64,000 nucleotides of DNA from Lepidodermella squamata (taxonomy: Eukaryota > Animalia > Gastrotricha), in the NCBI GenBank assembly GCA_047495785.1, contig JBLDXI010000016.1, forward strand, positions 992,001 through 1,056,000. Direction: 5' to 3'. This document shows positions 21,846 to 61,602 of this stretch, one piece after another. Under the pieces are notes generated by a model, which worked only from the letters and a program-made list of their open reading frames with translations, had not been told where the DNA came from and did not search any database. Positions within the stretch are counted from its first letter, which is position 1. Each line of letters begins with the position of its first letter. The position numbers were made by a program, and so were the translations under genes.

Positions 21846-22004
21846 CGGGTGTGGCGCGAACGCCGGTACCCAAGTGAAATATTTTGCACCCGACTCCACC
21901 GATGAGGCAGAGCGCAGGGGTCAGCGGACCGCAGTGCAATGGCCCGCCTCGCCCTGGGGCGACCGACTTGCTGAGCTCGGTTCATCCCAGTGCCAGGTAA
22001 GTTT
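21846..22004 (-). ncRNA. U1: U1 snRNA (variant Sm site)
   Basis: 5' AAACUUACCUGG, U1A loop AUUGCAC, four-way junction colinear with metazoan U1, terminal GCG-UUCG-CGC hairpin; 159 nt. Confidence 0.95.
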
Positions 22005-22120
22005 AGTGGCCAAAGGTCCACGCGATCGACCCCACTTGGCAGTTGGACCATAAGTGGCTACTGAAATCGTTTGGTTATTCCTATTTAAATCGAAATTCTG
22101 ATAAAAAATATTGCGACAGT

Positions 22121-22192
22121 TAGCAGAGCGTAGTTTCGATCTACAGACCTCTGGGTTATGGGCCCAGCGCGCTTCCACTGCGCCACTCTGCT
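22121..22192 (-). tRNA. tRNA-iMet(CAT)
   Basis: AGCAGAGTGGCGCAG..., A1:U72 pair, GGG/CCC anticodon stem, AUCG T-loop. Confidence 0.95.
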
Positions 22193-22261
22193 TGTCTGAA
22201 GAAGGAATGAATTACTCGATCGTTGTTTTTGAAGTTGTCGAGAATTTGAATGAAAAAATGA

Positions 22262-22343
22262 TGGCAGCGGTGGGGTTCGAACCCACGCCTCCGAAGAGAC
22301 TAGAGCCTAAATCTAGCGCCTTAGACCACTCGGCCACGCTACC
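22262..22343 (-). tRNA. tRNA-Leu(TAG)
   Basis: 82-nt cloverleaf with long variable arm. Confidence 0.95.
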
Positions 22344-22496
22344 TTGATAGAAAAATAACCTTGAGAAAAAATCGGAAACTCCAAGTGAAACCTTTGCGAG
22401 CTTTGCGAGCTACTGACCAATGCATTCGGGGAAATTTCTTAATTTTACGTTATTTGCAGCTAATTAATAACGCTGCAGATTGTGGCGGAAAAAGTA

Positions 22497-22569
22497 TGGA
22501 GGATACGGGCGTCGATCCCGTTACCTCTCGCATGCTAAGCGAGCGCTCTACCATTTGAGCTAATCCCCC
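22497..22569 (-). tRNA. tRNA-Ala(AGC)
   Basis: G3:U70, anticodon AGC. Confidence 0.95.
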
Positions 22570-22638
22570 TTCGAGATCTTCGACTTCTTGGCAGCAGGTT
22601 GATCACATAAACGAGGTACTCTCGGTAAAAAAAGCTTG

Positions 22639-22711
22639 CGCCCTCCGGGGGACTCGAACCCCCGACCCTGTGATTAAAAGTCACATGCTCTACCGACTGA
22701 GCTAGGAAGGC
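22639..22711 (-). tRNA. tRNA-Lys(TTT)
   Basis: Cloverleaf, anticodon loop CTTTTAA. Confidence 0.95.
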
Positions 22712-23030
22712 CCTTAGAATGCGAAGCAGATTGATGGCGAATGTGTGAAATCAGCAAAATTGAAATAAAACTGAATCTACTGATTTGCTCTGTCGGTAAT
22801 TAGGGACAACAAAGTGATTGTCCAGCGGCACCTATACAGCTAGATTTACCTATTCGTTGTTTTTTTTCCTAATTCTGCTATTGTTGTTAACAAAAACTAG
22901 ATCCTCTTTCTGTGTCATCGGTCATGCGCTACCTGCAGACCATCGCTTTTATAAAATAAAATGATCATTGTTGTGTTGAAGCCTGCTACTGAAAATTGAA
23001 AATAAACAAAAATAATACAAAAGGAGAAAA

Positions 23031-23103
23031 TGACGCTGATGGGACTCGAACCCACAATCTTCGGATCCGAAGTCCGACGCGATAGCCATTTCGCCACAGC
23101 GCC
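23031..23103 (-). tRNA. tRNA-Arg(TCG)
   Basis: Cloverleaf, anticodon loop CTTCGGA. Confidence 0.9.
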
Positions 23104-26919: not shown

Positions 26920-29877
26920 GTGACAATGGTAGCCCGATACGAGGGATACGAGATCAGCTTTTCGAAAATAACAAAGGTCCCGTCTTCATCTACTCCGAAT
27001 CGTCGTCGCAATTCATCGATACCAACGAAAACGTGATCGCCTTCACAACGGCCGCCGTTCCAGTGGTCCCGAAATCAGCAGCTCTCGCCGCTGCCGCCCC
27101 ATCGCCTCATCGATCGAGCAGCGCCGTTGTTGTACCAGCGCAACATCGCAACGATCAAATCTCGCCAAGCAATGCCCCTATGGTCCCTGTTTTTCGATCA
27201 TCTAACAATTATTTCAACCCATTCAGCTTCAATTCAGTCGTTAGCCGGCCGATACCCTTCACCTATCACCCTAATTTCATGCCAACTGAGGCGAGTTTCC
27301 TGCCGAAGAAAATCGTGGCCGAAGCGCAGACTCGCGACGTTTTCCAACTTCGCCAAGCTAACCCAGTCAACGTACCAGACCCGGCAACCTCGACAATAAT
27401 CACCCCGTCCGGCGTGCAAATACCCGTTCATCACATGAAATCACTCAACCGGAACGACCAACTTACTGGCCACGAAACAAATTCCCTCATCTTCGGCCCG
27501 CTGCCGTCTACGATAAGCGTTTGCCCGCAAGATTTCCTGTGCTGTGAAGAAGGAGCTGTCTATCGAAATCACTACAACATTTTACAATGTTGCGGCGTTG
27601 AATCGTTCGATAACAGGTATGAAGCGTGTGTAGCAGGCGGTGTGGCGCCCTTGAAAGAGGGCATGCCTCGCTTGACACCAGCAGCTCGCCTTCAGCAAGT
27701 TTTCTGCGGTCCGGATAACGAGTTGTACTTTGCGCCAACTCTCTACCGATGCTGCAACGGGACCTTTTACGATTCATCGAAATTTCGCTGCTCTGAGTCC
27801 GGAAAAATGGTTAGATTTACATTGTTCTCGACAGTTTAAACATTCAACCAACCGGGTAAAAAAAATTGGAAATGTTTTAATTTTATATCAGAATTTAAAT
27901 TTCAAATTTCAAATTATTTCAAAACTTGACACTGAGCATAAACTATAATTTATATTTGAAGTGCGCTACTGCGAAAAGCATGCAATATAACAATTGCGGC
28001 AATTCATGTGGATTTTTTTCAAATTAATCAGAAATGTCCCGAAAAGCTTGAAAAGGCATTATTGGGTGAATTGTTAATTAAAATGTTAGTTCCAAAACGG
28101 GAATTCGGTTCCTATAAAATGTTGATCCAATGAAGTTTTTTAATTAATAATTAATTAGTCTAACAATTTTTCAATTTTTTAGAAGCTTTTTTTAATTTTT
28201 CACATTTTAATTTTAATTTTAATTTTAAAATATTTCTTTTAGACGACCAAGATTATCGCAACGACCACACCTGAGATGACTACTACAACGGCTGAGCCAA
28301 CTACCGCAATAATGTTGCTATCAACACGAAAAACGCGCCGAGTTGCGTCTCAAAGGCCGAAAAATTCCGAAATGGTGAACTCCTCTGAAAATCCGAGTCG
28401 GCGAAAGGGACGCTATCCGCACCACAGCCATGCGAGGCGGTTTCCGCACGGGCTAGATGCGAAATCGCGCCGAGTGGCCTCGGTTCAGAGTGAGGTTGGA
28501 GCGGTTAATAAAACGCGCGGCAAACGCGAGTACATTGTGTGCGAAATGTATCGCTATCCTATTACGTATCGAGGCCTTCGAACGTGGGGCTGCTGTGGAC
28601 AGCAGTTGTTCAACTATAAAATGGTAAATTTTAATACAAAAATCGCAAATTTCCACAATTCTGTTAATTGATAAATCCTACATCCCAACTTTTTCCATTT
28701 TCATGACAGAGTATAGGGGACTTTATTTGTTGCCGGATTTCTCAAAGCTGTCTGAAGACTGGGAATGCAAATTTAGCAACTCTGTAGACTCGCTATACCC
28801 TGATCAGTTTTATATAAAAAATATCAAGCTCAAGTTTTGTGTTGTAGAAATTAGTTCATCCTCATTAATTCGTTCTTTCTCGGGTCTGAGGTTAGAAAGG
28901 AGAATATTCTCGCAAAATATTTCAGCCTAAAATTCCTAATTCCCTTATTACTGATGCTCGAAATATACTATTTATGATGGAAATTGCGCATTTTTCAAAT
29001 GAATGAATGGTGTACAAAGTGCGCAATAACACATTTTCGCTCGTTAAGTCGACCTAATTTTCGAATCTAGATCGATGGAAGCTGCATGAAGGTCCCGCAA
29101 CTTTGATGGCTTTACAGGGCGCTATTCTTTAAAACGGAGACATCGGAATAGCGTCGAAAATGAATTTTTTCTCTCACTCTTTTCATTTGATCTTGGCGTA
29201 AATTTCATTTTTTCTAACTCGAGACTGATGGCTATTGTTTAAGGTGATAGCTATTGCTTGTTTTTCGCCATATTCGCATCATTTTTCCAACCGGCCGAGT
29301 TCAAAGTTTTACGATAACTCTATCTTCAGCTCAATCCGTCGACCCAGTTAATTTTTCTCATATTTTATCAAGCTAATTTTTCACTGTTTTCGCGCGAATT
29401 TTTTGAATTTTTACTTATTTTTAGTTCGCTGTAGCGCATTTTAACCATTAAAATTGTGATCCTACTCGCGGTAATTATTGTTTTTGTTTGTCTTCTTTTA
29501 CAAGGAAAATTGCACCGAAGGTGAGATAGTAAAAACATCCTATTCGCAAAAGTTACAACGTCCGCCGGGCGAACTCATGGTCTACTGTTCCGGAGGCATC
29601 CAGCACTGGATAGACCCGGCCAACCTCATGCAGGTATTATTAAAAATGCTCGATTTTTATCAACCCTTAATTTAACATTTTTTAGACACGTTGTTGCGGA
29701 TCCAAGCTGTGCCCAAGGCTTGGCAAAGTTCCAGAATCAGAGATCAGCCTAAATGACCCGATGGTGATTGAAAATAATACTGAAATTGACAAAATCTCGG
29801 ATGAATCTGACTACGAAATCACTGACGGCGATTTATCAGACGATGATGAGTGGAAAAGAAAACTGAAAGTGCTGTGA
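26920..29877 (+). CDS. Galaxin-like Cys-Cys repeat protein, paralog 2 (5' exon not resolved)
   Basis: Exons about 26920-27809, 28243-28623, 29504-29632 and 29686-29877. Same FLCC/LQCCG/RCCNGTFYD/WGCCGQQ/GELMVYC/RCCG blocks as paralogs 1 and 3. Confidence 0.75.
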
Positions 29878-31981: not shown

Positions 31982-33040
31982 ATGATCCGGGAACTTATCG
32001 TCGCCGCCGTCCTTATCGGCGCCTGCTCTGCTCAAAACAACGGTAAGTCTTATTGATTCCTTACTAAATCGTTGAATTTCTCTCACGTTGATAGCTGATA
32101 ACACAGCCCAGTCATCAGATGACGGCACCATCCCGTTCTTGTCGCGTTTCCTCCGGCCTTCGAACCCGAGCAACTTCGCCAACCCCGCTCAGCCCGCCGT
32201 CCAAGCTGCCCAAGCCGCTGTCCAGCAGGCCGTTCAGAACCCGGTCCAAAACGCCGTTCAGTCGAGCGTGTCCTCCATCCTGCCAGCCCCGACTGCCTCG
32301 AACGTCTACGGCCCGGTCGAGACCAACTGGTCGACGTGCCCGCTCGGCTTCCTGTGCTGCCAACAATCCGTCTACAAGGACACTTACAAGCTGTTGGCGT
32401 GCTGCAACGACGACTCGTACGACACGCGCTTCCAGAAGTGCCAGCAGGGCGTCATCCTGCCATTGGTCGCCGGCATGCCAACCCCGACCCCGGCCGAGCG
32501 TCTGATCCGCATCAACTGCGGCGGCTACTTGTACATCACGACCGACACGCACCGCTGCTGCAACTTCGCCGTCTACGACCCGGACACGCAGATGTGCATC
32601 TCCGGCACCGTTCAGAACCGCCCGTCGCCGCAACAGGCGCCGCTGCCCCTCGGCTCCGTCTACGTCGTGTGTGCCAGCTACCGCTTCTTGTTGTCGACGC
32701 AAGCGACACTCACTTGGGGCTGCTGCGGCCAGCAGTTGTACAACTACAACAGCGAGAACTGCACGTCAGGCATCGTCGACCCGCCACGCTCCGCCAGCCA
32801 GGATGCGCAGGTGCCCAAGGGCGAGCTCATGATCTTCTGCACCGGCAAGCGCCACTGGATCGACCCCGCCAATCTTTACACGGTTAATAAAAAAAAATCC
32901 ACCTTAATTATTTTGATTTTAATAATGTAATGTTTTTTTCGCAGACCCGCTGCTGTGGAACCGAGATCTGCCCTCTGCAATCAGCTCCGACCGTACTGGC
33001 TCCCAACCAAACACCAGTACAGCCGGCGGTGAACCAATAG
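31982..33040 (+). CDS. Galaxin-like secreted Cys-Cys repeat protein, paralog 3 (3 coding exons)
   Basis: Signal peptide MIRELIVAAVLIGACSA; introns 32043-32094 and 32884-32944; CC repeats; very strong C/G-ending codon bias. Confidence 0.8.
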
Positions 33041-34222: not shown

Positions 34223-34304
34223 GGTAGCGTGGCCGAGTGGTCTAAGGCGCTAGATTTAGGCTCTAGTCTCTTCGGAGGCGTGGGTTCGAACCCCACCGCT
34301 GCCA
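34223..34304 (+). tRNA. tRNA-Leu(TAG)
   Basis: Identical to other Leu(TAG) copies. Confidence 0.95.
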
Positions 34305-34373: not shown

Positions 34374-34445
34374 AGCAGAGTGGCGCAGTGGAAGCGCGCT
34401 GGGCCCATAACCCAGAGGTCTGTAGATCGAAACTACGCTCTGCTA
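34374..34445 (+). tRNA. tRNA-iMet(CAT)
   Basis: Identical to the 22121 copy. Confidence 0.95.
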
Positions 34446-34560
34446 ACTGTCGCAATATTTTTAAAAAGAATTTCGATGAAAAAGGAATAACCAAATGACT
34501 TCAGCATCCACTTATGGTCAAACTGTCAAGTGGGGCCGATCGCGTGGACCTTTGGCCACT

Positions 34561-34719
34561 AAACTTACCTGGCACTGGGATGAACCGAGCTCAGCAAGTC
34601 GGTCGCCCCAGGGCGAGGCGGGCCATTGCACTGCGGTCCGCTGACCCCTGCGCTCTGCCTCATCGGTGGAGTCGGGTGCAAAATATTTCACTTGGGTAAC
34701 GGCGTTCGCGCCACACCCG
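34561..34719 (+). ncRNA. U1: U1 snRNA (variant Sm site)
   Basis: AAACTTACCTGG...ATTGCAC...GCGTTCGCGC; same structure as the 21846 copy. Confidence 0.95.
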
Positions 34720-35261
34720 TAAAATTACAAACAAGTAACTTCAAATCGTGTAGCGTCAATATCTTCCCGACGTTTTTTGAAACCGGCTACTTTTGCGCAT
34801 TCGATGTTTCCGCTCAGATTTAAATTATAGAACATATATTTATCCTAATTATTCATTTGAAATTTGCACCCCGACTTTTGTTTAACGTCAATTTTCGTGA
34901 TTTTATATTTTTTCAATACGGCATTTCCCTTCCAACAGTTGTTCATTAAAAATAATTATTAATTCGAAATGATTTTTCATAATTTCCATGTCGCCAAACA
35001 CTTGCGCACTTATGCCGCGAGGTTATTGCAATCGAGTTGGAAGTTATTAGGTCTTGGGAACTAGCCCGACGAAATCGCGGGTGATAGGTCCACGTCCAAA
35101 GAAGTAGTTCAGCTCCCTTCGCAACGCGTTGTGGCTACATTCAGCCTACACCAGAAAAAAATCAACCTAATCGGCTTTTAGCTTGTGAATTCCCCTCAAT
35201 TAGGGCCTTGGGAGTATCCTAATACACCGATTTTCAAAATGTATCTGAGTTCTTGCTCAAA

Positions 35262-38213: not shown

Positions 38214-38295
38214 GGTAGCGTGGCCGAGTGGTCTAAGGCGCTAGATTTAGGCTCTAGTCTCTTCGGAGGCGTGGGTTCGAACCCCACCGCTGCCA
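38214..38295 (+). tRNA. tRNA-Leu(TAG)
   Basis: Identical to other copies. Confidence 0.95.
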
Positions 38296-38457
38296 TCATT
38301 TTGCCATCGGTCAAGGCGAAGCCGAAACTCGAACTAATTTCAGCAGGCAATGGACAAATATTTGAAGTCATTCATGACTCGGGGTAATTAGGATACAAGT
38401 TTTGTTTATGTTGCAGACAAGTTTATTCAGCCAGCTGGTCAACTGATATTTCAGCCA

Positions 38458-38539
38458 GTCGCTATGCCCGAGTGGTTAAGGGGTCTGACTAGAAATCAGA
38501 TGCGGTCTCCGCGCGTAGGTTCAAATCCTACTGGCGACG
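38458..38539 (+). tRNA. tRNA-Ser(AGA)
   Basis: Identical to the 23793 copy. Confidence 0.95.
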
Positions 38540-38616
38540 AACATTTATGCAAACTGATTGTTAGAAAGCTAAATACCGCAACAGTTGGCTTCAAGAACAG
38601 TCCGCGCTTTCACCAG

Positions 38617-38687
38617 GCGTCAGTGGTGTAACGGTCAGCATGGTTGCCTTCCAAGCAGCCGATCCGGGTTGACTCCCGGCTGACGCA
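38617..38687 (+). pseudogene. tRNA-Gly(TCC) with T-loop C deletion
   Basis: GGGTTGACTCCC instead of GGGTTCGACTCCC; the invariant B-box C is missing. Confidence 0.7.
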
Positions 38688-38775
38688 CACGTTTTTACAG
38701 CACACGCTTGATACTACCAAACGCATTACTACATTAAAGATTGAAGGTGATCTTGCCCTTAACAGTGTTCGAAAA

Positions 38776-38839
38776 GGTCCCATGGTTAGCACTCTGGACT
38801 CTGAATCCAGCGACTCGAGTTCGATTCTCGATGGGACCT
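38776..38839 (+). pseudogene. tRNA-Gln(CTG) pseudogene, 8-nt D-arm deletion
   Basis: CCATGGTTAGC versus intact CCATGGTGTAGCGGTTAGC. Confidence 0.85.
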
Positions 38840-38912
38840 TGATATGTTTTTTTCTAACAAACTTGGGATCCTTGAAGTTACCATGCTGCGAACCTTTTAT
38901 TGTACTAGCCTA

Positions 38913-45295: not shown

Positions 45296-45367
45296 AGCAG
45301 AGTGGCGCAGTGGAAGCGCGCTGGGCCCATAACCCAGAGGTCTGTAGATCGAAACTACGCTCTGCTA
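45296..45367 (+). tRNA. tRNA-iMet(CAT)
   Basis: Identical to other copies. Confidence 0.95.
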
Positions 45368-45483
45368 AATGTCGCAATATTTTTAATCAGAATTTCGATT
45401 TAAATAGGAATACCCAAATGGCTTCAGCATCCGCTTATGGTCCAACTGCTGTGCGGGGCCGATCGCGTGGACCTTTGGCCACT

Positions 45484-45642
45484 AAACTTACCTGGCACTG
45501 GGATGAACCGAGCTCAGCAAGTCGGTCGCCCCAGGGCGAGGCGGGCCATTGCACTGCGGTCCGCTGACCCCTGCGCTCTGCCTCATCGGTGGAGTCGGGT
45601 GCAAAATATTTCACTTGGGTATCGGCGTTCGCGCCACACCCG
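45484..45642 (+). ncRNA. U1: U1 snRNA (variant Sm site)
   Basis: Same structure as the other copies. Confidence 0.95.
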
Positions 45643-46229
45643 TAAAATTTTAAGAAAAATATATGTCTCACTTTTACTTGGTTCTTATCAAAACTTCGAA
45701 AGTAATATACCGGATTTGTTCCAATTTTAGCCCAGGGTTGAGGGGCCAAGTCGGTTCGAAAGTATGAAAAATGAACGAGTAATTAACGATTAATTAACGA
45801 TTAATTAATTAAGGAATCGTTCACTTTTTATACTTTCGAACCGAATTGACGTTAATTAGTTAGTTAATTAATTTTCGAGTTTACCAAAATTTGAAGGTTG
45901 AAATTTTTGTAGCCCGGGCTGCTATAGGAACAACTATGAGAATATTAACAGGCTAATTGCACTGATTCATTCCTATCATTTTTTCACTCGGAACTACCGT
46001 GTACCAGAAATGCTACTCACTTACGATGCCTTTGGAAATACGTAAGATTATGTAATACCCTAATACGTTTGTATTTTATCTTCATCTCCATGCTAGTCTA
46101 ATCTGGCTCAGTGGGGAATGAGTCACATAGTTTGGCACCTACTATATCAACCTGCATGTTTGTGGAAAAGTTCAAGCATCACGTTTTATTAGTTTCAGTC
46201 GACAAGGCGAAAGCATTTTTCAAGCACGA

Positions 46230-48210
46230 ATGCTACAACCACTAAGGAACGTCTTTTATTCTACTCTCATTATCAGTGCGATTTTTCCTCCAACGACTGA
46301 AGCAATCGAACTGCCTCTAGCATGTGTGACTAACACTACGCTCGACCAGTGGATGACCAACTTACCTGCCAGGCTACGCGATCTGCCTCTGACAAAACTG
46401 GCTATTCCTGGATCCTATGCAGCGTTTTCAAGTACCCTAAACCCCAGCCTCGGCCGAGATTATACCATCGACCGCGATTTGATGCCATTTCAGCTGTCTC
46501 GACGCATCAATGACGACTTGATGAACTGCAGGCTGGAGCAATGGGGCATATCTCAGGAACAAACCATTTTCGACCAGCTGTACCTTGGCATCCGGTATTT
46601 CGACCTTCCAATCGCAGCTCGCAACCCGGACTATTACATGGTTAATGACAACAAGATTTACTTTACCAGCTATATTCATCAGTCTATGCCGGAGATGTTT
46701 GGCGACATGAGAGATTTCTTGAATATGAACCCTGGCGAGGTTGTTATACTGAACTTCAATAATTTCGACAGCATGACTCAGCAGCAGCATGTCGCGTTTC
46801 TGAAGAAGCTCTACATCAACTTTGGATACGATATGTTCGCGAAGCCTAGCGATTACCCTGATGGACCGAGTTCCATGAGTTTGAGCAACATGACAGCTGC
46901 GGGCCATCAAATAATCATTTTTTACGACAAGGCAACTGGGCCGGCTAGTTCTATAGCTTGGCGGGGTGATGCAATTAGTGGAAGCGAGGCTTCCTACACG
47001 GAACAAACAGGGCTTGAAGTCAATTGGGCTGAGGTAATTAATTGATTAATTAATCCATATTTTTTAAATTTTTACTCCCATCGAAATAAAAAAATCTGAA
47101 AATTAAACCAGAGGTGGGATGGAAATATCTGATCTTTCTTGAAATTTTAGAAATGCTTCTATTTTAATGGAATCTAGCATTTGGGAATAAGGTATCATTC
47201 AAGAATCGCACGAATCGTTCGGACGCTCATTTGAATATATTTTAATGACCTCATGACTCTCAAAACGTAAAGAAGGAATGAGCGGCTTTAACTCTGGGTC
47301 TTACTTTTAGCGGAATCAAATTTTGGAATTTTCATTTGGCATAAAACCAATTTTAGAAACATTCTAAGATGTCATGATTGATCGGCATAATTGTAAATAA
47401 ATCATCTCAAAATTCAACGTGAAATTCTGTGTTGGACACATTTTTTCCTATTGAATTTACTCTCTGCCATAATTTCGTGGAAATATTCAAGAAGCGACCT
47501 TTGGCTTATCTAGAACTATAGGTTCGCAACATGCAACCAATTCCGCAACGGGCAAAAAATATTCTGCTTTTAATTAAAAAAATGCAATTACTTGTTGTCG
47601 CGAATTCGAAAAGATTTTAAATCTGAATCTCAGGTTAAAATTGGCTCGTAGTAGCGGGTCCTCAATAAGCATCCCGAATTGCATCCCAAATTTTAACCGA
47701 AACGCCATTTATAGGTTATTTCCGAAAATTTATCAGCCTCCAATTTTACAAATTGTTGTCTTTTTACTGAACTTACAGGCCGTTCGGTCGCGACCGGCTG
47801 ATGACACCAATTTGTTCGTCTTGCCTGGTGTAATGGTACCTTCAATTGGGCTGTTTGAGGATAAATTATTGATGCAACCTGGCAGCTATTTGGGGCAAAT
47901 GGGCGCGTGCACGACCAGCAAGTTTGTAAAATGGATCAAAGCGAATCGTCTAGCGGCAAGTAGTGGAAAAATCAACATATTTATGGCGGCGTTTGTTCAC
48001 TACTACAATTTTTTCGGCGAGATCATCGCGTTGAACTACGCGGACGAGGCGAAACCTGTCGCAGCCGCGGATCTAACGGCGAGTTATTGCATTCGGCAAC
48101 CGACGTTTTATGCGTGCAGTAATGAACTCGGTGATGGTGATATGTGCTCGAAATATGATACTGGGGAGTACTATACAAATTTTCCAAGATCAAGTCTCAT
48201 AAATGTTTAG
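46230..48210 (+). CDS. Secreted PLCXD-like protein, paralog 4 (2 exons)
   Basis: Exons 46230-47033 and 47779-48210; signal peptide; AIPGSYA and GIRYFDLP motifs. Confidence 0.85.
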
Positions 48211-48214
48211 ACAT

Positions 48215-49296
48215 TAAGGGAATACTCTATGGCAAACCATGGAGAAATATAATTTCCCCCCTCTCTGGAACCCCTCGATTCGTTTGGCTGCGCCAAACTC
48301 ACTCGGGGTTCCAGATCGGGGGGAAATTATATTTCTCCATGGTTTGCCATAGAGTAATCCTATTCCCACATGCGCACGACACCTGTAGGCTCACTAAAGG
48401 GGTGTAATAGGTACACAGGGGTGAATTCACAGTAACCATTTTGAGAAAATAAAACATCCAACTTAAAATTTCACGAAAATGATTCTTCGTTTGTAAAAGA
48501 AAATCATTTTTCATTCCGGCGAATTTTTTCTTGTTTGCAACTTGATTTTTGGTCAACCTTCATTCGTCGTCGAAATCGTCATGCTCTCCGGCTGGCCGAA
48601 GCATCAGTAGTCAAGATTCATGGAATTCAGAGCGCCGATATCAAGCCCCGATCATCAAGCCGAGATCATCAGTTGCCTTGGTTCGATGGATTCTGGAAAC
48701 GAACAAATCGTTGCCTCGAAGAATCCTCTCAAATCGATCGCCAGCCAGCCGGTTGCGCACAGAAATCAATGAATCTGCATCGCGTCGTTTGGGAGACTGG
48801 CAACGATAAAAGCCATCCGCTCGCTACATGGTATCCGATGGTATTCAGGTCGCGGCGGAAATAAATCGTGGATATGGGTCAATTTTGCCGGTCGAAGACT
48901 CGCCGAGAAAGCAGTCATTGTCGCCTCTAACGTTGCTATGGCTAGTCGCTGACGTTCTTTCGCTGCTCAAAACCGCGATTCCGGAGGGAAAACCGGATCT
49001 GCATCGCCTCAGCTGCCAGCAAGAAATTTCGACGACCTCGCTTTCCGCCTCATTTGGTCAAATTTTTATTTTTGGACGTGAAATTGCTTTTAAATAAAAT
49101 TGGGGTTTTCACTGTTCTAGTGACTTTCAAGTGACTTTTCTGGGGGTTTTGAGGCAAATTCTGAGCGAAATGCTGCCCAAATTTGTGGCAGTTTCAACCC
49201 AAAGAGAAATTATTGGTTGCCATAGAGAAACATTTCTAGCCATAGAGAAACATATGTTTCTCCATGGCAAAATTTAACCATGCGTATGTGGGAATA
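48215..49296. mobile_element. Non-autonomous ~1.08-kb element with terminal hairpin, copy 2 (flop form)
   Basis: Inserted 4 bp after the PLCXD stop codon. The 3'UTR (CATTGAA..GTTCATTCAATTTCA, also seen uninterrupted in the 55660 paralog) resumes after the element. Confidence 0.8.
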
Positions 49297-49898: not shown

Positions 49899-49980
49899 GG
49901 TAGCGTGGCCGAGTGGTCTAAGGCGCTAGATTTAGGCTCTAGTCTCTTCGGAGGCGTGGGTTCGAACCCCACCGCTGCCA
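49899..49980 (+). tRNA. tRNA-Leu(TAG)
   Basis: Identical to other copies. Confidence 0.95.
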
Positions 49981-50141
49981 TCATTTTGCTATCAGCTACG
50001 GCGAAACCAAAACTCAAACTAATTTCAGCAGGCAGTGGACAAATATTTGAAGTCATTCGTGACTCGGGGTAATTAGTAATGAGGTTTCTTTATGTTATAG
50101 CCAAGTATATTGAGCCAGCTGGTCAACTGGTATTTCAGCAA

Positions 50142-50223
50142 GTCGCTATGCCCGAGTGGTTAAGGGGTCTGACTAGAAATCAGATGCGGTCTCCGCGCGT
50201 AGGTTCAAATCCTACTGGCGACG
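50142..50223 (+). tRNA. tRNA-Ser(AGA)
   Basis: Identical to other copies. Confidence 0.95.
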
Positions 50224-50297
50224 ACAGTTTTTGCAGATTGACTGGAAATTTGAAATCAGCAGCACCTCGCTTCCAGAACAGTCCCCACATTCATGAG

Positions 50298-50369
50298 GCG
50301 TCAGTGGTGTAACGGTCAGCATGGTTGCCTTCCAAGCAGCCGATCCGGGTTCGACTCCCGGCTGACGCA
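50298..50369 (+). tRNA. tRNA-Gly(TCC)
   Basis: Intact cloverleaf. Confidence 0.95.
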
Positions 50370-50461
50370 CACGTTTTTACAGCACACGCTTGAGAGTAGC
50401 GAACACATTGCTTGGAGAGGTTAAAGGTTAAAGCTGATCTTGCCCTTAACAGTGTTCGAAA

Positions 50462-50533
50462 GGTCCCATGGTGTAGCGGTTAGCACTCTGGACTCTGAAT
50501 CCAGCGACTCGAGTTCGATTCTCGATGGGACCT
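50462..50533 (+). tRNA. tRNA-Gln(CTG)
   Basis: Intact cloverleaf. Confidence 0.95.
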
Positions 50534-50616
50534 TGGCTACGTTTTTTGGGCAAGAGAACAAACACTCATGTGCGACAAGTCCCAACCAGTGTTAATCTAG
50601 TAGGCAGGTCGGCCTA

Positions 50617-50688
50617 GGGGGCATAGCTCAGTGGTAGAGCGTCTCATTCGCATTGTGAAGGTCTCGGGTTCAATCCCCGATGCCTCCA
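50617..50688 (+). tRNA. tRNA-Ala(CGC)
   Basis: Identical to other copies. Confidence 0.9.
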
Positions 50689-50745
50689 GTTGGCCACTTT
50701 TTCACATTATTAATGGGAAATTAAAAGCAAAAAGTCGTAAAATGG

Positions 50746-50829
50746 TGTCAGAAGTGGGGTTCGAACCCACGCCCTCTTTCGAGGACCAGATCTTGAGTCT
50801 GGCGCCTTAGACCGCTCGGCCATCCTGAC
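50746..50829 (-). tRNA. tRNA-Leu(CAA)
   Basis: Identical to other copies. Confidence 0.95.
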
Positions 50830-50938
50830 TGCTTGACCAACCTCTCGATTATTTGCAAATCAACACACTGTTTCTAGCTTCGAGCAATCACAATCAGAGC
50901 GAGCTTGAAACCTTCCATTGGCTGCAGCTGATAAGAGA

Positions 50939-51011
50939 GGCGCTGTGGCGAAATGGCTATCGCGTCGGACTTCGGATCCGAAGATTGTGGGTTCGAGTCC
51001 CATCAGCGTCA
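50939..51011 (+). tRNA. tRNA-Arg(TCG)
   Basis: Identical to other copies. Confidence 0.9.
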
Positions 51012-51142
51012 TTTGCTCCTTTTGTACTATTTTTGTTTTTGTTTGTACTATTTTCAGTAGCATGCTTCAAAAGCCAACGTATTTTTATTTCTTATTTTGC
51101 TGATTTCGTACATTGACCAACAATTTGCCTCTCATATCACGG

Positions 51143-51215
51143 GCCTTCCTAGCTCAGTCGGTAGAGCATGTGACTTTTAATCACAGGGTCGGGGGTTCGA
51201 GTCCCCCGGAGGGCG
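51143..51215 (+). tRNA. tRNA-Lys(TTT)
   Basis: Identical to other copies. Confidence 0.95.
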
Positions 51216-51279
51216 CAATAATTTTTACCCAAAGTAACTTGTAACTTGCTAATGCTGCTAAGATGACGAAGATCTTGAA

Positions 51280-51352
51280 GGGGGATTAGCTCAAATGGTA
51301 GAGCGCTCGCTTAGCATGCGAGAGGTAACGGGATCGACGCCCGTATCCTCCA
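51280..51352 (+). tRNA. tRNA-Ala(AGC)
   Basis: Identical to other copies. Confidence 0.95.
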
Positions 51353-51506
51353 CAACTTTTTCGGCTAGCGAGTAAGATAAGATAAGATAAGCAAAACAAA
51401 TGATGAGAGGACTTGACACTCAAATATTTGAGCATTTGGATGTCTTCCGTCCCTTTTTATAACGCCATCATCAAACAGGATGAACATTTAGAAGGTTAAA
51501 AAAAAG

Positions 51507-52891: not shown

Positions 52892-54196
52892 TCAGTTACT
52901 AACAGTGCTTTGCATCTTCGATAAATCGTCAAATTTCACGTAATCACTAACAGTTTTAGGCAAGCCCAGCAACTCGATGGCTCGATTCCGCTCGTTGAGG
53001 CCCTTCGGCAGCTGATTGAGCAAAACACGCCGCGACAGCCTTTGCAGCGATAACGGAACTTTCGAGTCGAATTCTACGCCAACTAGCCCGTACTCTTCTA
53101 GGATCCGCCTTAAAAACACAACCAACCGCGGCCTGTCGTCGATCGGCGTTCGGATTAGCACTAAATGATGCTGACTTGTCGCTCTGATTCGGGCGGGTAG
53201 GCGAAACCCGGCCTGGATAAGGAGTAGCAGGCCGTTCCTTAGAACCAGCTCGAACTCGTCGAATTTGCCAGATGATAGCAATTTTTTCAGCAGGGTGAAT
53301 AATGCAGCTTCTAACTGGTAACGCCTCGACAAACTCGCCAGAGCTTGGCTGGAAAACATTTCCAACAACCTGCGGTATAAATCGGGCGATTGATAGGCCA
53401 GCGATGAGATACTCGCGATTGAGACTGAATCTTCAATCGAATCCCGATCTGAAACTAAACCAGCTTTCACTTCTTCCTGCCGTCTATTCAGGAATAGCTT
53501 CATCATAACAACGTAATCGTCGATTGGGTGATTTGTCATCAGAGCTTGGCTGATTGATGACGCGGTGGCGACGATCGGCCTAGGGTGGGGCCGTCTACCA
53601 GGCGGGGGGTCGTTCAAAACCACGGTTAACGCGCCTTTTTTCAAGCAAATTTTAACGCATTCAGGATAGCCGTTGTAGACAGCTTCGTACAACAGCGCCT
53701 GTAGGTAGCAGCGCGGGATGATTGCTGAATTTTTTCGAATTAAAACCGAAAAATTGCGATGGTCACCGGAGGAAACCGAACACCACAATTGCATAGCTAG
53801 CCGGTGGTCGAAAACTTTTTTATGAAAAACTTTCGCAACATCTTTCAACCGAAATTTCGTTAGTTCGGCGAGAAATTTTTCGTGGAGTTCTTTCGATTGC
53901 GATCGGCTGATTTCTCGCAGGCCGATATCACGATCTTGCCGCTGCGAATTCGAGCAGTAGCCGGTTAAACACCGCGGGTAGAACATGATAAATTGCGCCT
54001 GGTCCGGGTCGAATTGTGACGTTAGCCTACTGAACAGGTACCAGTGCGATTGAAGGGTGGAACTCGTTGTTGTATCAGGGGGAAGTTTTAGCCTAACTTT
54101 GCACCATGTCGCGTTCGCTAGCGCCAGGTAGTCGTCGTGGAAGTTGTCGGTGTTAAGCGGGCAATTTGGCGGGCAGATAAGGCGGCCTCGTTGCAT
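52892..54196 (-). CDS. Intronless SOCS-box protein with degenerate ankyrin repeat (ASB-like)
   Basis: C-terminal VPLSLQRLSRRVL...LGLPKTVSDYV (BC box plus Cul box); LLYEAVYNGYPECVKICLKKGA is ankyrin-like. Confidence 0.75.
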   Translation of the reverse strand: MQRGRLICPPNCPLNTDNFHDDYLALANATWCKVRLKLPPDTTTSSTLQSHWYLFSRLTSQFDPDQAQFIMFYPRCLTGYCSNSQRQDRDIGLREISRSQSKELHEKFLAELTKFRLKDVAKVFHKKVFDHRLAMQLWCSVSSGDHRNFSVLIRKNSAIIPRCYLQALLYEAVYNGYPECVKICLKKGALTVVLNDPPPGRRPHPRPIVATASSISQALMTNHPIDDYVVMMKLFLNRRQEEVKAGLVSDRDSIEDSVSIASISSLAYQSPDLYRRLLEMFSSQALASLSRRYQLEAALFTLLKKLLSSGKFDEFELVLRNGLLLLIQAGFRLPARIRATSQHHLVLIRTPIDDRPRLVVFLRRILEEYGLVGVEFDSKVPLSLQRLSRRVLLNQLPKGLNERNRAIELLGLPKTVSDYVKFDDLSKMQSTVSN

Positions 54197-55659: not shown

Positions 55660-57113
55660 CTAGTTATCTATAAGACTTGATCTTTGCACATTTGAATAGT
55701 ATCCGCCATTTTCATATTTCGAGCACGCGTCAAATGGATATAATCGAGTATATCCTAGTTTGCGGCACTCAAAAAACCTCGGCTCCTGAATGCAATAACT
55801 CGCCGTTAGACCCGCGGCTGCGACAGGTTTCGCCTCGTCCGCGTAGTTCAACGCGATGATCTCGCCGAAAAAATTGTTGTAGTGAACGAACGCCGCCATA
55901 AATATGTTGATTTTTCCACTACTTGCCGTGAGACGATTCGCTTTGATCCATTTTACGAACTGGCTGGTAGTGCAAGCGCCCATTCGCGTAAAATAACCGC
56001 TACGTCCTACCACCAATTCATCATGTAACAGCCTCATTGAAGGTTCCGTCACACCACATATGACAAAGAATTTGTTGTCATTGGCTGGTCGCGACCTAAC
56101 GGCCTGCAATTTTGAAACAAAAATGTTACCTTAAAATTTCTACTGTAACGTAAAAAATTTGCTAAAAATCTAGTAAAAATGGGAAATTTTATAAAATTTC
56201 AGAGAAATTCAGATATTGTCCAGCCTCTGGTTTAATTTCCGACGCAAAATTTAAAAACATGTATTAAAAAGAATGTGATTACTTCTGTCCAATTTTCCTC
56301 AAGCTCCGTTAGCTCCGTGTATGAAGCCTCGCTTCCACGAATTGCATCACCCCGCCAAGCTATGGAACTAGCTGGCCCAGTTGCCTTGTCGTAAAAAAGG
56401 ATTATTTGATGTCCCGCAGCTGTCATGTTTCTCAGGCTCATCGAACTCGGCCCATCAGGGTAATCGCTAGGCTTCGCGAACTTATCATATCCAAAGTTGA
56501 TGTAGAGCTTCTTCAAAAAAGCGACATGCTGCTGCTCAGTAATGCTCTCGAAATCATTGAAATTCAGTATAATAACCTCGCCAGGATTCATATTCAAGAA
56601 ATCCCTCATGCCGCCGAACACACTCAGGTCGCCAAACATCTCTGGCGAAGACTGATGAAGATAGTTGGTAAAGTAAATCTTGTTGTCATTAACCCCTAAA
56701 TATTCAGGGTTGCGAGCTGCGATTGGAAGGTCGAAATACCGGATGCCAAGGTACAGCTGGTCGAAAATGGTATGTTCCTGAGCTTTGCCCCATTGCTCCA
56801 GCCTGCAGTTCATCAAGTCGTCATTTACGCGCTGAGACAGCTGAAATGGCATCAAATCGCGGTCAATGGTATAAACTCGGCCGAGACGGGGGTTTAGGGC
56901 TCTTGAAAAAGCTGCGTAGGCCCCTGGAATAGCAAGTTTTGTCAGTGGCAGATCGCGTAGCCTGGCAGGTAAGTTGGTCATCCACCGATCGAGTGTTGTA
57001 TTCGTCGTACATCTTAAAGGCAGTTCGGCTGCATCAGTCGTTAGAGAAAATAAAATCGCACTGATAATGAGAGTAGAATAAACAAAATGCATCAACATTG
57101 ATAGTGCTGGCAT
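55660..57113 (-). CDS. Secreted PLCXD-like protein, paralog 5 (2 exons)
   Basis: Exons 57113-56283 and 56103-55660; AIPGAYA and GIRYFDLP motifs. Confidence 0.85.
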
Positions 57114-57451
57114 TTGTGATGAAAAATGCTGAAGTTGAGCCGACGTGATGCTTTGTTAAATCTTTCGAGATGCATGCTCGTGGGTTTCAAGATGTGACTC
57201 ATGTTACCACGCAGAACTAAACTAGAATAGCCTGAGATAAAGGCAGATAACACGAAATAAATATTTAATGTTTCACGTACCTTCGGGGTCATGAAAATAT
57301 GATATAAGGGTTAAGGGTTGGCATATTTCTAGCAACTAAGGTCGGATCCGGGACCTGGTTTAGCAACCGACTGCGGTGCGCTGTGGCCATCGCATTTTCG
57401 GGTTTTGAAAGGCTTTCACTTCCTTGCGGATTTCATTTTCTATTGCTTTTC

Positions 57452-57610
57452 CGGGCGTGGCGCGAACGCCGTTACCCAAGTGAAATATTTTGCACCCGAC
57501 TCCACCGATGAGGCAGAGCGCAGGGGTCAGCGGACCGCAGTGCAATGGCCCGCCTCGCCCTGGGGCGACCGACTTGCTGAGCTCGGTTCATCCCAGTGCC
57601 AGGTAAGTTT
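57452..57610 (-). ncRNA. U1: U1 snRNA (variant Sm site)
   Basis: Same structure as the other copies. Confidence 0.95.
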
Positions 57611-57726
57611 AGTGGCCAAAGGTCCACGCGATCGACCCCACTCGGCAGTTTGACCATAAGTGGATGCTGAAGTCATTTGGTTATTCCTTTTTCATCGAAA
57701 TTCTTTTTAAAAATGATTGCGACAGT

Positions 57727-57798
57727 TAGCAGAGCGTAGTTTCGATCTACAGACCTCTGGGTTATGGGCCCAGCGCGCTTCCACTGCGCCACTCTGCT
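57727..57798 (-). tRNA. tRNA-iMet(CAT)
   Basis: Identical to other copies. Confidence 0.95.
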
Positions 57799-57866
57799 TG
57801 TCTGAAGGAGGAATTTGACCATTCAGTAGCTGTTTTATAAGTGTCGTGAATTCAAATGGAAAATTA

Positions 57867-57951
57867 TGGCAAGCGGTGGGGTTCGAACCCACGCCTCCGA
57901 AGAGACTAGAGCCTATAAATCTAGCGCCTTAGACCACTCGGCCACGCTACC
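57867..57951 (-). pseudogene. tRNA-Leu(TAG) variant with 9-nt anticodon loop and acceptor-stem insertion
   Basis: Loop TTTATAGGC (2 nt extra) and 3' strand CGCTTGCCA (1 nt extra). Confidence 0.75.
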
Positions 57952-58948
57952 TCGGCTTCTCTTTATTCCACTATTTAACCAATAATTCAAAACAAGCGAG
58001 TGGTTGAAATGATGTTTTGGAGCTGAGGAATTTTCGCAAGGAGATCTATTTGCTGCGGCGTCGAATTTCGGCTAATTAAAATGCATCAAAACGGGGTGAG
58101 GTGGCGGTCTGATTGTTTCAAAGTCTTTTAACCAACATCGAGCTGTAATATTCCTCAAAGGGCGATCAATAATTCATCAAAATTGAAATTATACAGTCAA
58201 TGTCTGAATAATTCCTGAATCGTCCTTCCCGCCGTGAAAGGGCTCATTTGATTAGGGCAGACGATGTTTTTCTGAAATTTTTAATTTGTTCAAGCTGAAT
58301 ACTAATACGTTAACTTGTGTATGTGCACTGTTGATTGACAATTTGCCAGCGTAGGCGGCTAGAGTTAGCCAGAGTTACCCAGCCTGCAGAGCCGATATCG
58401 ATTTCAAGAATCGACTTTACAATTCAGTGATTTTTCCGATATCAGCCGTCGTAGTAACCAACATCGATAATTTTTCTATGTAGCTTAGGGCGCCAGGCAG
58501 CTGTGGTAAAAATCCTAGATTCAGGGAGCGCATGAGCATCGATCAAAAACTTGAAACACCGAAATCGCAAAGAATCTGAAAAATGTAGTGCCAGTTGGAC
58601 GCTTAAATTTCGTGCATGAACCTCATTTTTAGTGGTGCAAATATTATTTGGACCCAATTGCAAATTAATGGCGAAATCACCCGGAAGAATGTTCGTTCGG
58701 GGTATTGTTGTTGAAATATTGTTTCAGGTAAATCTAGTGCTGCGGTCTCACATTTAGTTTTGGTATTTGTGAAATTGCTGAGTTTTTTTTCCAAGTTTCG
58801 ACATTTCGAGTTACTCGCTCGATCACACGAACTCAACCGAATTGTTTCAACGGACAGAAATTATTGTCGCTACTTTATTTCTTTAATAAGCGGAATTATC
58901 ATGTCCATCGAGCCTAAAATTAGATGAACAAACCGTTCAATGCAATTT

Positions 58949-60546
58949 CTAGTTATCTATAAGACTTTTTCTCGGGAAATATGTAAAATACTCCTCAGTT
59001 TTATAATCCGAGCACTCATCACTATCATTGTCTTGATTCCTGCACACAAGAAACGTCGGCTGCCGAATGCAATAAATCGCCGTTAGATCCGCAGCGCTGA
59101 CAGGTTTCATCGCCTCGCCCGCGTAGTTCAACGCGATAACCTCGCCGAAAAAATTGTTGTAGTGAACGAACGCCGCCATAAATATGTTGATTTTTCCACT
59201 ACTTGCCGTGAGACGATTCGCTTTGATCCATTTTACAAACTTGCTGGTCGTGCACGCGCCCATTTCCGTCAAATAATTGACAGGTTCCAGCAATATTCCA
59301 CCCTGCAACATCCCAATTGAAGGTACCATCACACCACGTAAGACAAATAGGTTTTTGTCATCATCTCGTCGCGATCTAACGGCCTGTAATTCCGGTGAAA
59401 AAAAATATTCCACCTATAAAATTGTATCGTAACGTGGAAAGTGTAGTTTGGAATACATAGCTCAGGGTAATTTGAGGTTGATTCAGCATTTTCTACTTTT
59501 GTTTGTTAATTTGACCTATTTTCGAGTGTCATGAGGTTCAATATTCAAATGAGCAACAATCCGTCCAATGTTAGGCGAATAGGCTCAAATTAGCTAAAAA
59601 TCGAGTACAAATTTCCTAACTTTCAGAGAAAATAAGATTTTGTCGAGCCTATACCTCTGGTTTAATTTTTTGGAGAACAGCTGATTTTAAAAAATTGAAA
59701 AACAGCGACTAATTATAATGTAATTACTTCGGTCCACTTTGGTTCAAGGTCCGTTAGTTCCGTGTAGGCCTCGCCTCCACTAATTGCATCAGCCTGCCAA
59801 GCTATGGAACTAGCTGGCCCAGTTGCCATGTCGTAAAAAATTATTATTTGATGTCCCGCAGCTGTCATGTTGCTCAAACTCATCGAACTCGGTCCATCAG
59901 GGTAATCGCTAGGCTTCGCGATCTTATCATATCCAAAGTTGATGTAGAGCTTCTTCAGAAACGCGACATGCTGCTGCTGAGTCATGCTGTCGAAATTATT
60001 GAAATTCAGTATAACAATCTCGCCAGGGTTTATATTCAAGAAATCTCTCATGCCGCCGAACAAGCCGAACTCGCCGAACATGTCCGGAATAGACTGATGA
60101 AGATAGTTGGTCAAGTAAACCTTGTTGTCATTAACCGCGTAATAGTCCGGGTTGCGAGCTGCGATTGGAAGGTCGAAATACCGGATGCCAAGGTACAGCT
60201 GGTCGAGAATGGTATGTTCCTGAGCTTTGCCCCATTGCTCCAGCCTGCAGTTCATCAAGTCGTCATTTACGCGCTGAGACAGCTGAAATGGCATCAAATC
60301 GCGGTCAATGGTATAAACTCGGCCGAGACGGGGGTTTAGGGCACTTGAAAAAGCTGCGTAGGATCCAGGAATAGCAAGTTTTGTCAGTGGCAGATCGCGT
60401 AGCCTGGCAGGTAAGTTGGTCATCCATTGTTCAAGCGTAGTGTTCGTCGTACATCTTAAAGGCAGTTCGTTTGCATCAGTCGTTGGAGGAAAAATCACAC
60501 TGATAATGAGAGAAGAATAAAAGACGTTCCTTAGTGGTTGTAGCAT
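58949..60546 (-). CDS. Secreted PLCXD-like protein, paralog 6 (2 exons)
   Basis: Exons 60546-59728 and 59383-58949; AIPGSYA and GIRYFDLP motifs. Confidence 0.85.
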
Positions 60547-61102
60547 TCGTGCTTAACAAATGCTTCAACCAAGTCGACAGAAACTAAACCATCATGCTTG
60601 TACTTTTCCAAAGGCATGCAGGTTGTAGTAGGTGCCAAACTATGTGACTCATTCCCCGCTGAGCCAGATTAGACCAGCATGAGATGAAGATTTAGTACAA
60701 ATAATTTACGTATTTCCGATGTCATTGAAATAAAGTTCTAGCATTTATGGTCGTTCTGAGTGGAAAAAGGTGTCCATTTAATGATCGGTGCAATTAGACT
60801 GTTGATAATATAACCGTATTTGTTCCTATTACGGCCCGAGCTACTGAAATTCAACCTCGAAATTTTGAAAAAATTCAAAATTGAAACAATAATTGTCGGT
60901 GAATCGTTCATTTTTAGTGATTTTGAACCGACTTGACTCTCAACCTCAACCCTCGGCTTACCATTAGGGATGGGCGATTATTATCGACTATTTTTGATAG
61001 CCTGAGCTATTTTTCGACACAATAAGGTGTAGTATTTCAGGAAGTTGAGTAATGTTCGAAAACAACCAATTAAAAATGACACCTATATTTTTCGTAATTT
61101 TA

Positions 61103-61261
61103 CGGGTGTGGCGCGAACGCCGATACCCAAGTGAAATATTTTGCACCCGACTCCACCGATGAGGCAGAGCGCAGGGGTCAGCGGACCGCAGTGCAATGGC
61201 CCGCCTCGCCCTGGGGCGACCGACTTGCTGAGCTCGGTGCATCCCAGTGCCAGGTAAGTTT
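61103..61261 (-). ncRNA. U1: U1 snRNA (variant Sm site)
   Basis: Same structure; one A>C change in stem I. Confidence 0.95.
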
Positions 61262-61378
61262 AGTGGCCAAAGGTCCACGCGATCGACCCCACTCAACAGT
61301 TGGACCATAAACGGACACTCAAGTCATTTGGTTATTCCTCAGATCTTGGGAGTTTCTGATTAAAAATATTGCGACAGT

Positions 61379-61450
61379 TAGCAGAGCGTAGTTTCGATCT
61401 ACAGACCTCTGGGTTATGGGCCCAGCGCGCTTCCACTGCGCCACTCTGCT
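61379..61450 (-). tRNA. tRNA-iMet(CAT)
   Basis: Identical to other copies. Confidence 0.95.
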
Positions 61451-61519
61451 TGTCTGAAGGAGGAATGTAGCCATTCGATCGTTGTTTTGAAGTTTTCAAG
61501 AATTCAAATGGAAAAATGA

Positions 61520-61602
61520 TGGCAAGCGGTGGGGTTCGAACCCACGCCTCCGAAGAGACTAGAGCCTAAATCTAGCGCCTTAGACCACTCGGCCACGCTA
61601 CC
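61520..61602 (-). tRNA. tRNA-Leu(TAG) with 1-nt acceptor-stem insertion (possibly pseudogene)
   Basis: 3' strand CGCTTGCCA, otherwise intact. Confidence 0.7.

Follow-up and report, generated by a model that had tools for sequence, protein, structure and literature searches.

In animal small nuclear RNA (snRNA) genes, a proximal sequence element (PSE) without a TATA box specifies transcription by RNA polymerase II (Pol II), and a 3' box stands in place of an oligo-T run (PMC1761439, PMC2527325). In trypanosomatids, all snRNAs are made by Pol III (RNA polymerase III), together with a divergently oriented transfer RNA (tRNA) gene whose A box lies at about -104, a dependence shown by mutation (PMC4950102, PMC2784804). 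Further associations of small-RNA genes include the dicistronic units of tRNA with small nucleolar RNA (snoRNA) or 5S RNA in plants, Yarrowia and Caenorhabditis elegans, the 5S rDNA-U1 repeats of razor shells and an isopod, and the histone repeat of Hydractinia, which carries 5S, U1, U2 and tRNA-Arg genes (PMC5011920 and its references for the last two). Here, we describe a cassette in which genes for tRNA-Leu(TAG), initiator tRNA-Met (iMet) and U1 snRNA follow one another, present in five copies (c1 to c5, in window order) within a 64,000-nucleotide (nt) stretch of the genome of the gastrotrich Lepidodermella squamata (assembly GCA_047495785.1, contig JBLDXI010000016.1, positions 992,001 to 1,056,000, forward strand). 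This whole stretch is referred to as the window, and all positions are counted from its first nucleotide. Literature searches found no published tRNA-iMet/U1 or tRNA/U1 cassette of this kind.

With the trypanosomatid snRNA, 7SL and U3 loci (PMC4950102, PMC2784804), the cassette shares a tRNA gene about 100 nt upstream, narrow spacing, and the clustering of small-RNA and tRNA genes. It differs from them in that the tRNA gene is co-oriented with U1 in all five copies and in the locus of a relative (L007, described below), that the tRNA boxes lie at about -176 and -132, that U1 has an apparent promoter of its own, and that no Pol III terminator follows it. As in the dicistronic tRNA-snoRNA and tRNA-5S units (PMC2527325, for C. 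elegans UM2, and PMC2566860), a co-oriented tRNA gene lies immediately upstream, but in those units no terminator separates the RNAs and the downstream RNA is without its own promoter, whereas the cassette has both. The 5S rDNA-U1 repeats and the Hydractinia unit resemble the cassette in the linkage of U1 to Pol III genes and in concerted evolution; however, they form long, uniform head-to-tail arrays, unlike the five dispersed copies on both strands found here, and the partner of U1 in the cassette is not 5S but a tRNA gene at a distance of about 116 nt.

The reading that we favour, with a probability of roughly 0.68, is that the cassette represents an ancestral juxtaposition of independent small-RNA genes that are passively linked and were multiplied by duplication. 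Under this scenario, Leu(TAG), iMet and U1 would have been brought together once within a region rich in tRNA genes, after which segmental duplication would have given rise to further copies of the ancestral unit, with purifying selection and gene conversion maintaining their uniformity. Each gene would be its own transcription unit, with the tRNAs using their internal A and B boxes and ending at their own T-runs, as Pol III genes do. U1 would be driven by its own TATA-less, snRNA-type promoter, composed of blocks at about -78 to -57 and -51 to -36 and a start-proximal block, and would end at an A-rich motif in its 3' flank, the Pol II/SNAPc/Integrator pattern typical of animal U1. Judged by the rules for animal snRNA genes, U1 looks like a Pol II snRNA gene preceded by a Pol III tRNA gene that is autonomous and has a proper terminator.

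ARAGORN identified 42 tRNA genes in the window, and comparison with Rfam yielded five full-length U1 genes (RF00003; 99.9 to 103 bits, where the gathering score is 69.5). Apart from tRNAs and U1, no RNA family was detected in the window, even at E <= 0.01. Copy c1, on the reverse strand, consists of U1 at 21845..22004 (103 bits, full model), a 116-nt spacer at 22005..22120, iMet at 22121..22192 (55.2 bits) and an intact Leu(TAG) at 22262..22343 (59 bits) that is identical to the Leu(TAG) of the tRNA clusters in the window. Copy c2, on the forward strand, comprises an intact Leu(TAG) at 34223..34304, iMet at 34374..34445, a 115-nt spacer at 34446..34560 and U1 at 34561..34720 (101.9 bits), and copy c3, also on the forward strand, comprises iMet at 45296..45367, a 116-nt spacer at 45368..45483 and U1 at 45484..45643 (102 bits), without Leu. 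The two remaining copies are on the reverse strand: c4 with U1 at 57451..57610 (99.9 bits), a 116-nt spacer at 57611..57726, iMet at 57727..57798 and Leu at 57868..57951, and c5 with U1 at 61102..61261 (101.3 bits), a 117-nt spacer at 61262..61378, iMet at 61379..61450 and Leu at 61521..61602. All five iMet genes and the Leu genes of c1 and c2 were recovered by both ARAGORN and Rfam. A preliminary description of this locus, made from the sequence alone, had placed the five U1 genes within 1 nt of the Rfam positions and a co-oriented iMet 115-117 nt upstream of every U1, and gaps within this range were measured here from the 3' end of iMet to U1 +1 (116, 115, 116, 116 and 117 nt in c1 to c5).

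The tRNA-Met(CAT) of the cassette displays an A1:U72 pair, an anticodon stem with three G-C pairs and, in place of TPsiC, AUCGAAA in the T loop, and we take it to be the initiator, judging from the features of eukaryotic initiator tRNAs. The tRNA-Leu(TAG) that the preliminary description reported in four units is present in those four, at 69, 69, 69 and 70 nt from iMet, but only the c1 and c2 genes are intact. The c4 and c5 genes have in common an extra T in the 3' strand of the acceptor stem. In addition, c4 carries a TA insertion that produces a 9-nt anticodon loop, so that ARAGORN reads the gene as 'Tyr(ata)' and its Rfam score drops to 39.2 bits compared to 59 for intact copies; this copy is probably a pseudogene, and the c5 gene, at 45.6 bits, is probably impaired. 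In c3, homology to the other copies starts only about 8 nt 5' of iMet. The proposal that Leu(TAG) forms part of a functional module is not supported, as the gene is decaying or absent in three of the five units. Relative to U1 +1, iMet occupies approximately -188 to -117, with its A box at about -181 to -171 and its B box at about -137 to -127, and Leu approximately -339 to -258; the region around -200 is indeed taken up by tRNA genes, as had been pointed out.

The spacer between iMet and U1 was delineated from the alignment of the five copies, with positions counted relative to U1 +1, variable columns taken from that alignment, and the blocks of each copy also traced by motif scan. The segment from -117 to -98 contains the iMet trailer (ACTGTCGCAAT) and a run of five or six T (5 of 20 columns variable) and is followed by a linker from -97 to -79 that accounts for all the length differences among the copies (15 of 19 columns variable). 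From -78 to -36 lie block 1, AGGAATAACCAAATGACTTCAG, and block 2, CTTATGGTC[C/A]AACTG, with 11 of 43 columns variable; block 1 extends from -78 to -57 and block 2 from -51 to -36, both retained in all five copies and positionally in L007. Both are candidates for SNAPc binding, the conserved PSE of metazoan Pol II U1 genes being placed about 40-65 nt upstream of +1. A short variable stretch at -35 to -31 (four of five columns) separates these from the start-proximal block at -30 to -1, in which only two of 30 columns vary. In c2, these parts correspond to 34446-34464 (trailer with T5), approximately 34465-34482 (linker), 34483-34504 (block 1), 34510-34525 (block 2) and 34531-34560 (start-proximal block). 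The reverse-strand c1 spacer has the same layout, with a T6 run, and its promoter-motif matches are at 22040-22054 and 22068-22082; terminator and upstream blocks are likewise present in the spacers of c3, c4 and c5. When the entire window was scanned, the block motifs were found only at the five cassettes; each has five matches, where 0.14 and 0.39 would be expected by chance. A TATA box, which would direct Pol III, is lacking at about -30: the interval from -32 to -25 reads AAGTGGGG in c2 and is likewise devoid of a TATA in the other copies, and L007 has GGGG at this place.

In all five copies, the T5-6 run begins 12-13 nt after the end of iMet, in agreement with the earlier claim that iMet has its own terminator. 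There is no run of four or more T inside U1, and the T-runs 3' of U1 follow no consistent pattern: c1 and c4 are free of them over 80 nt, and a T4 located at +5 is peculiar to c3. The absence of a terminal T-run from most U1 copies had also been anticipated, and four of the five lack T4 at the 3' end. The first ~16 nt past U1 are A-rich and alike in four of the five copies (c4 diverges) and in L007; in c2 this semi-conserved flank, a candidate 3' box, is located at 34721..34736, and it does not match the vertebrate 3' box consensus. The U1 genes themselves match the full Rfam model, with a 5' splice-site recognition sequence and four aligned stem-loops, and their Sm region is atypical (AAUAUUUCAC), in a form common to L007. 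The cassette U1 is similar to animal Pol II U1 genes served by SNAPc, with the PSEA/PSEB of insects or the PSE/UM1 of C. elegans (PMC1761439, PMC2527325), in its four stem-loops, upstream blocks confined to ~80 nt, lack of a TATA box and of an oligo-T terminator, and a short, semi-conserved motif immediately beyond the 3' end as candidate 3' box. The TC[C/A]AAC within block 2 resembles the invariant ATTC-CAA core of insects. In contrast to those genes, none of the published PSE consensus sequences fits the blocks well, the block positions are not those of the fly PSEA (-61 to -41), and there is no separate distal element, the space being occupied by active-looking tRNA genes 116 nt away.

The U1 loci of relatives were sought by protein search with a spurious 61-amino-acid (aa) open reading frame (ORF) that spans block 2 through U1. 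This search identified L007 and L008, two contigs of 1.1-1.7 kb from assembled metagenomes that are 96% identical to each other; the name of L007 carries the BioSample of a marine biofilm metagenome set. Their U1 (104.7 bits) is 81% identical to the window U1 and shares with it an unusual AAACUUACCUGGCACUGGGAUG start and the odd Sm region. The differences between the window U1 and these relatives in stems I-III are compensatory, involving 11 pairs, which indicates that both are working genes of one lineage. The upstream blocks of L007 lie at the same distance from +1 as those of the window, within 1 nt: block 1 reads GGCATATGCAAAT in L007 and GGAATAACCAAAT in the window, block 2 TGGTGTTCA-CTG and TGGTCAAACTG, the start-proximal motif TGGCCACTAA in both, and the U1 3' flank AAAATTTTGAAACAA and AAAATTACAAACAA, respectively. 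At 360-367, L007 contains an exact octamer, ATGCAAAT, at -72 to -65 within block 1, where the window has AACCAAAT; in vertebrates, the octamer is part of the distal enhancer of snRNA genes, not of the proximal region.

In L007, the gene order around U1 is Pro (opposite strand), Val, U1, Ala-AGC, Arg-ACG, Leu-CAA (opposite strand), Lys-CTT and Arg-ACG, a cluster loosely like the tRNA clusters of the window, and the tRNA upstream of U1 is a co-oriented Val(CAC) with its own T5 run that ends 135 nt before U1. Neither the identity of iMet nor the exact spacing is therefore conserved, and what is found again is a U1 gene lying inside a tRNA cluster and preceded, at 115-135 nt, by a co-oriented tRNA gene. 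The idea of a linked translation-initiation/splicing module retains its factual base, that is, the physical linkage, the autonomous iMet and the U1 without a Pol III terminator, but a dedicated module is not supported, given that L007 has Val(CAC) in the place of iMet. The notion of a functionally fixed spacing fares no better: the preliminary description had listed spacing that differs between species among three findings that together would speak against its idea, and 135 nt in L007 compares with 115-117 nt in the window. The constancy of ~116 nt within the window is explained by inheritance and gene conversion, together with the ~20 nt taken up by trailer and terminator and the ~78 nt taken up by the putative promoter, which leave only ~19 nt free.

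Other searches for relatives were less informative. Three marine metagenome contigs from a distant metazoan (L002-L004) contain a U1 that is, by eye, ~70% identical to the window U1, with no tRNA gene within 458 or 765 nt upstream, in an organism too distant to be decisive. No match was obtained in metagenome, GTDB genome and viral contigs to an iMet anticodon arm followed 130-160 nt on by a U1 5' end, nor, in the GTDB and viral contigs, to the lineage-specific U1 5' pattern. A further candidate, an ENA contig (L009), was rejected as a false positive because the matching region, 4981-6383, is a 55-nt satellite in 25 copies, translated as a 466-aa 'protein', that matched the spurious U1 ORF by chance.

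Self-comparison of the window shows that the cassettes are 90-96% identical in pairs over 360-535 nt, with nothing alignable outside. Conservation is graded along the unit: iMet is identical at 72 of 72 positions in all pairs and the U1 copies at 98-99%, with 80-90% for the iMet-U1 spacer, 63-79% for the Leu-iMet spacer and random-level similarity in the flanks. The copies lie scattered over both strands at distances of 3.6-12 kb, surrounded by tRNA clusters and protein-coding genes and separated by unrelated DNA, and no tandem array of the unit exists in the window. The parsimony-informative sites of the 116-nt spacer back nearly every bipartition of the five copies (c2+c4, c4+c5, c3+c5, c1+c5, c2+c3, c2+c5, c1+c2 and c1+c4), and such a mosaic of incompatible sites within 100 nt points to gene conversion among paralogues, a process that is common within snRNA gene families. 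The site mosaic, along with the sharp edges of homology against random flanks, marks concerted evolution of the linked genes. The observed pattern lies far outside what chance would give; as homologous copies, however, the five units are paralogues of one ancestral cassette and count as a single evolutionary event.

The duplications were larger than the cassette, given that c3, c4 and c5 are each accompanied by a paralogous single-exon ORF of ~1 kb, 370-430 nt 3' of U1, with a synonymous divergence (dS) of 0.17-0.30; a distant fourth copy of the ORF (dS ~1.4) lies 4 kb downstream of c1. The members of this family, at 46230-47045(+), 56232-57113(-), 59713-60546(-) and 16797-17753(-), encode proteins of 271-318 aa whose N-terminus is hydrophobic and which match the PI-PLC-X domain weakly; no relatives emerged from a word-based protein search. 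Near c1 and c3 there are also short direct repeats, which were put down to chance since they lack colinearity with U1 or iMet.

Several observations weigh against the view that the tRNA genes are passive neighbours of an autonomous Pol II U1. Polymerase assignment and factor binding are what we infer, and the former rests on sequence rules from other animals. Each of the five iMet genes in the window has a U1 attached to it, and the 37 remaining tRNA genes called by ARAGORN include no further iMet. A co-oriented tRNA gene lies close upstream of U1 in both members of the lineage that were compared. The 11-nt trailer ACTGTCGCAAT at the 3' end of iMet is nearly invariant in the five copies (22109-22120(-), 34446-34456(+) and the equivalent positions), although tRNA trailers ordinarily vary freely. 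The tRNA-Val trailer of L007 does not share it, and its conservation may stem from a conversion tract or from a signal for processing or binding. Upstream of ~-78, the five copies contain no conserved sequence other than the tRNAs, and no octamer/SPH enhancer at about -200, which leaves the tRNA gene as the sole conserved candidate for an upstream activator. A distal octamer/SPH enhancer defines the snRNA genes of vertebrates and is not known to be universal. In C. elegans, full activity of snRNA-type promoters requires sequences between -90 and -264 (PMC2527325).

These considerations lead to an alternative that we regard as unlikely, namely, that the upstream tRNA gene, bound by TFIIIC/TFIIIB and free of nucleosomes, activates, opens or insulates the Pol II promoter of U1, with any tRNA gene replacing the octamer/SPH element of vertebrates, which would explain iMet here and Val in L007. 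The restriction of upstream conservation to the tRNA genes favours this alternative, as do the intact iMet of c3, where the sequence 5' of iMet is unrelated to that of the other copies, the complete conservation of iMet next to a decaying Leu, and the recurrence, in two organisms with different tRNAs, of a co-oriented tRNA gene 115-135 nt upstream of U1. Precedents are the snRNA genes of trypanosomatids, which need the A and B boxes of a neighbouring tRNA gene (PMC4950102, PMC2784804), and the undefined -90 to -264 sequences of the C. elegans promoters (PMC2527325). The five copies, however, amount to one event, and there is one comparison species, in which the spacing differs by 19 nt. In the clusters, tRNA genes follow one another at intervals of 55-320 nt, most of them on the same strand, so that a close, co-oriented tRNA neighbour is expected by default for any gene embedded in them. 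The conservation of iMet, an essential tRNA subject to gene conversion, is expected in any case, and the U1 of the distant marine metazoan has no tRNA gene within the 458 or 765 nt upstream. Furthermore, in budding yeast, tRNA genes repress rather than activate neighbouring Pol II promoters. Somewhat less probable still is the reading that the U1 genes of this lineage have lost a conventional distal enhancer and depend on a co-oriented, active tRNA gene of whatever identity, 115-135 nt upstream, which would hold the Pol II promoter open and highly active; this would amount to an animal counterpart of the trypanosomatid partnership, with a Pol III gene in the service of a Pol II gene.

Transcription of U1 by Pol III, either through dicistronic read-through from iMet or from a trypanosomatid-like, tRNA-dependent external promoter, appears highly improbable. 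In principle, Pol III could traverse U1, given the lack of internal T4 runs, and a T4 run does follow U1 after 5-6 nt in c3 and L007. Dicistronic tRNA-snoRNA and tRNA-5S genes are also described for plants, Yarrowia and C. elegans (PMC2527325, PMC2566860). The read-through precursors suggested in the preliminary description are nevertheless at odds with the T5-6 run that each of the five copies has between iMet and U1 and the T5 run after Val in L007, and with the upstream blocks of U1, conserved across species as its presumptive own promoter; these two features make read-through unlikely. The absence of T4 at the 3' end of four of the five U1 genes (in c1 and c4, anywhere within 80 nt), the lack of a TATA box at -30, and a co-orientation and box distances (A box at -181 to -171, B box at -137 to -127) that depart from the trypanosomatid rule also argue against transcription by Pol III.

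It is just as improbable that the cassette belongs to a mobile element or is carried by one, such as a transposon with small-RNA genes as target or cargo, or that the U1 copies are retro-pseudogenes or heads of short interspersed elements (SINEs), with copy number and spacing as products of transposition. In favour of this are the scattering of the copies in both orientations, their sharp boundaries of homology, and the existence of Dada transposons, which target U1 and tRNA genes (PMC3706591), and of SINEs with snRNA-derived heads (PMC4494074). On the other hand, there are no terminal inverted repeats or target-site duplications around the cassette, the homology boundaries vary from pair to pair, U1 is full length and uninterrupted with upstream blocks and a 3' motif that retro-copies would lack, its covariation with the relatives preserves structure, and the neighbouring ORFs were co-duplicated with c3-c5.

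The rest of the window is populated by tRNA clusters, repeats and protein-coding genes. A cluster of eight tRNA genes, in the order Leu-TAG, Ser-AGA, Gly-TCC, Ala-CGC, Leu-CAA (on the opposite strand), Arg-TCG, Lys-TTT and Ala-AGC, occurs three times, at 24116-22497(-), 38214-39641(+) and 49899-51353(+), with 87-89% identity including the spacers. The first copy runs directly into c1, and copies 2 and 3 have extra or rearranged members (Gln-CTG; duplicated Ser and Ala). In copy 2, between Gly-TCC and Ala-CGC, a 64-nt tRNA-like Rfam match (38776-38839(+), 47 bits) that ARAGORN did not call probably represents a truncated tRNA, at the place where copy 3 carries an intact Gln-CTG. A 1.1-kb repeat with 91% identity between its copies at 43282-44354 and 48215-49296, each of which opens with a near-perfect 142-nt palindrome (43286-43427 and 48219-48360), may be a foldback element or one similar to miniature inverted-repeat transposable elements. 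Protein-coding regions were delineated at 3962-4871, 18593-19807, 7224-8686, 27033-27839, 32088-32930, 9668-11447 and 52892-54196. Two of the genes code for cys-loop receptors and several for galaxin-like repeat proteins; a GT92 glycosyltransferase is spread over at least two exons, and one ORF of 434 aa has a SOCS box at its C-terminus. The SOCS box, the cys-loop receptors and the galaxin-like repeats mark the source as a metazoan, and the U1 and gene content of the window are unlike those of human. Few or no close database relatives exist for most of the window proteins: a galaxin-like ORF has relatives at 69-81% identity, on short contigs only, a word-based protein search with a cys-loop receptor ORF produced almost no matches, and exact look-ups of ORFs of the window returned no record. 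The region from 32 to 34 kb shows a strong negative GC skew (-0.17).

The cassette is a variant among the already known linkages of small-RNA genes. If the tRNA gene merely travels with U1, the locus adds another example of small-RNA gene clustering and concerted evolution, useful for annotation and unsurprising. If the tRNA gene were needed for U1, this would be the first case in animals of a Pol III gene acting as an upstream activator of a Pol II snRNA gene, and would provide a compact, natural system of ~350 bp for the study of cross-talk between Pol II and Pol III. The comparison between species narrows the question from iMet at -116 to whether, in this lineage, U1 needs any adjacent tRNA gene.

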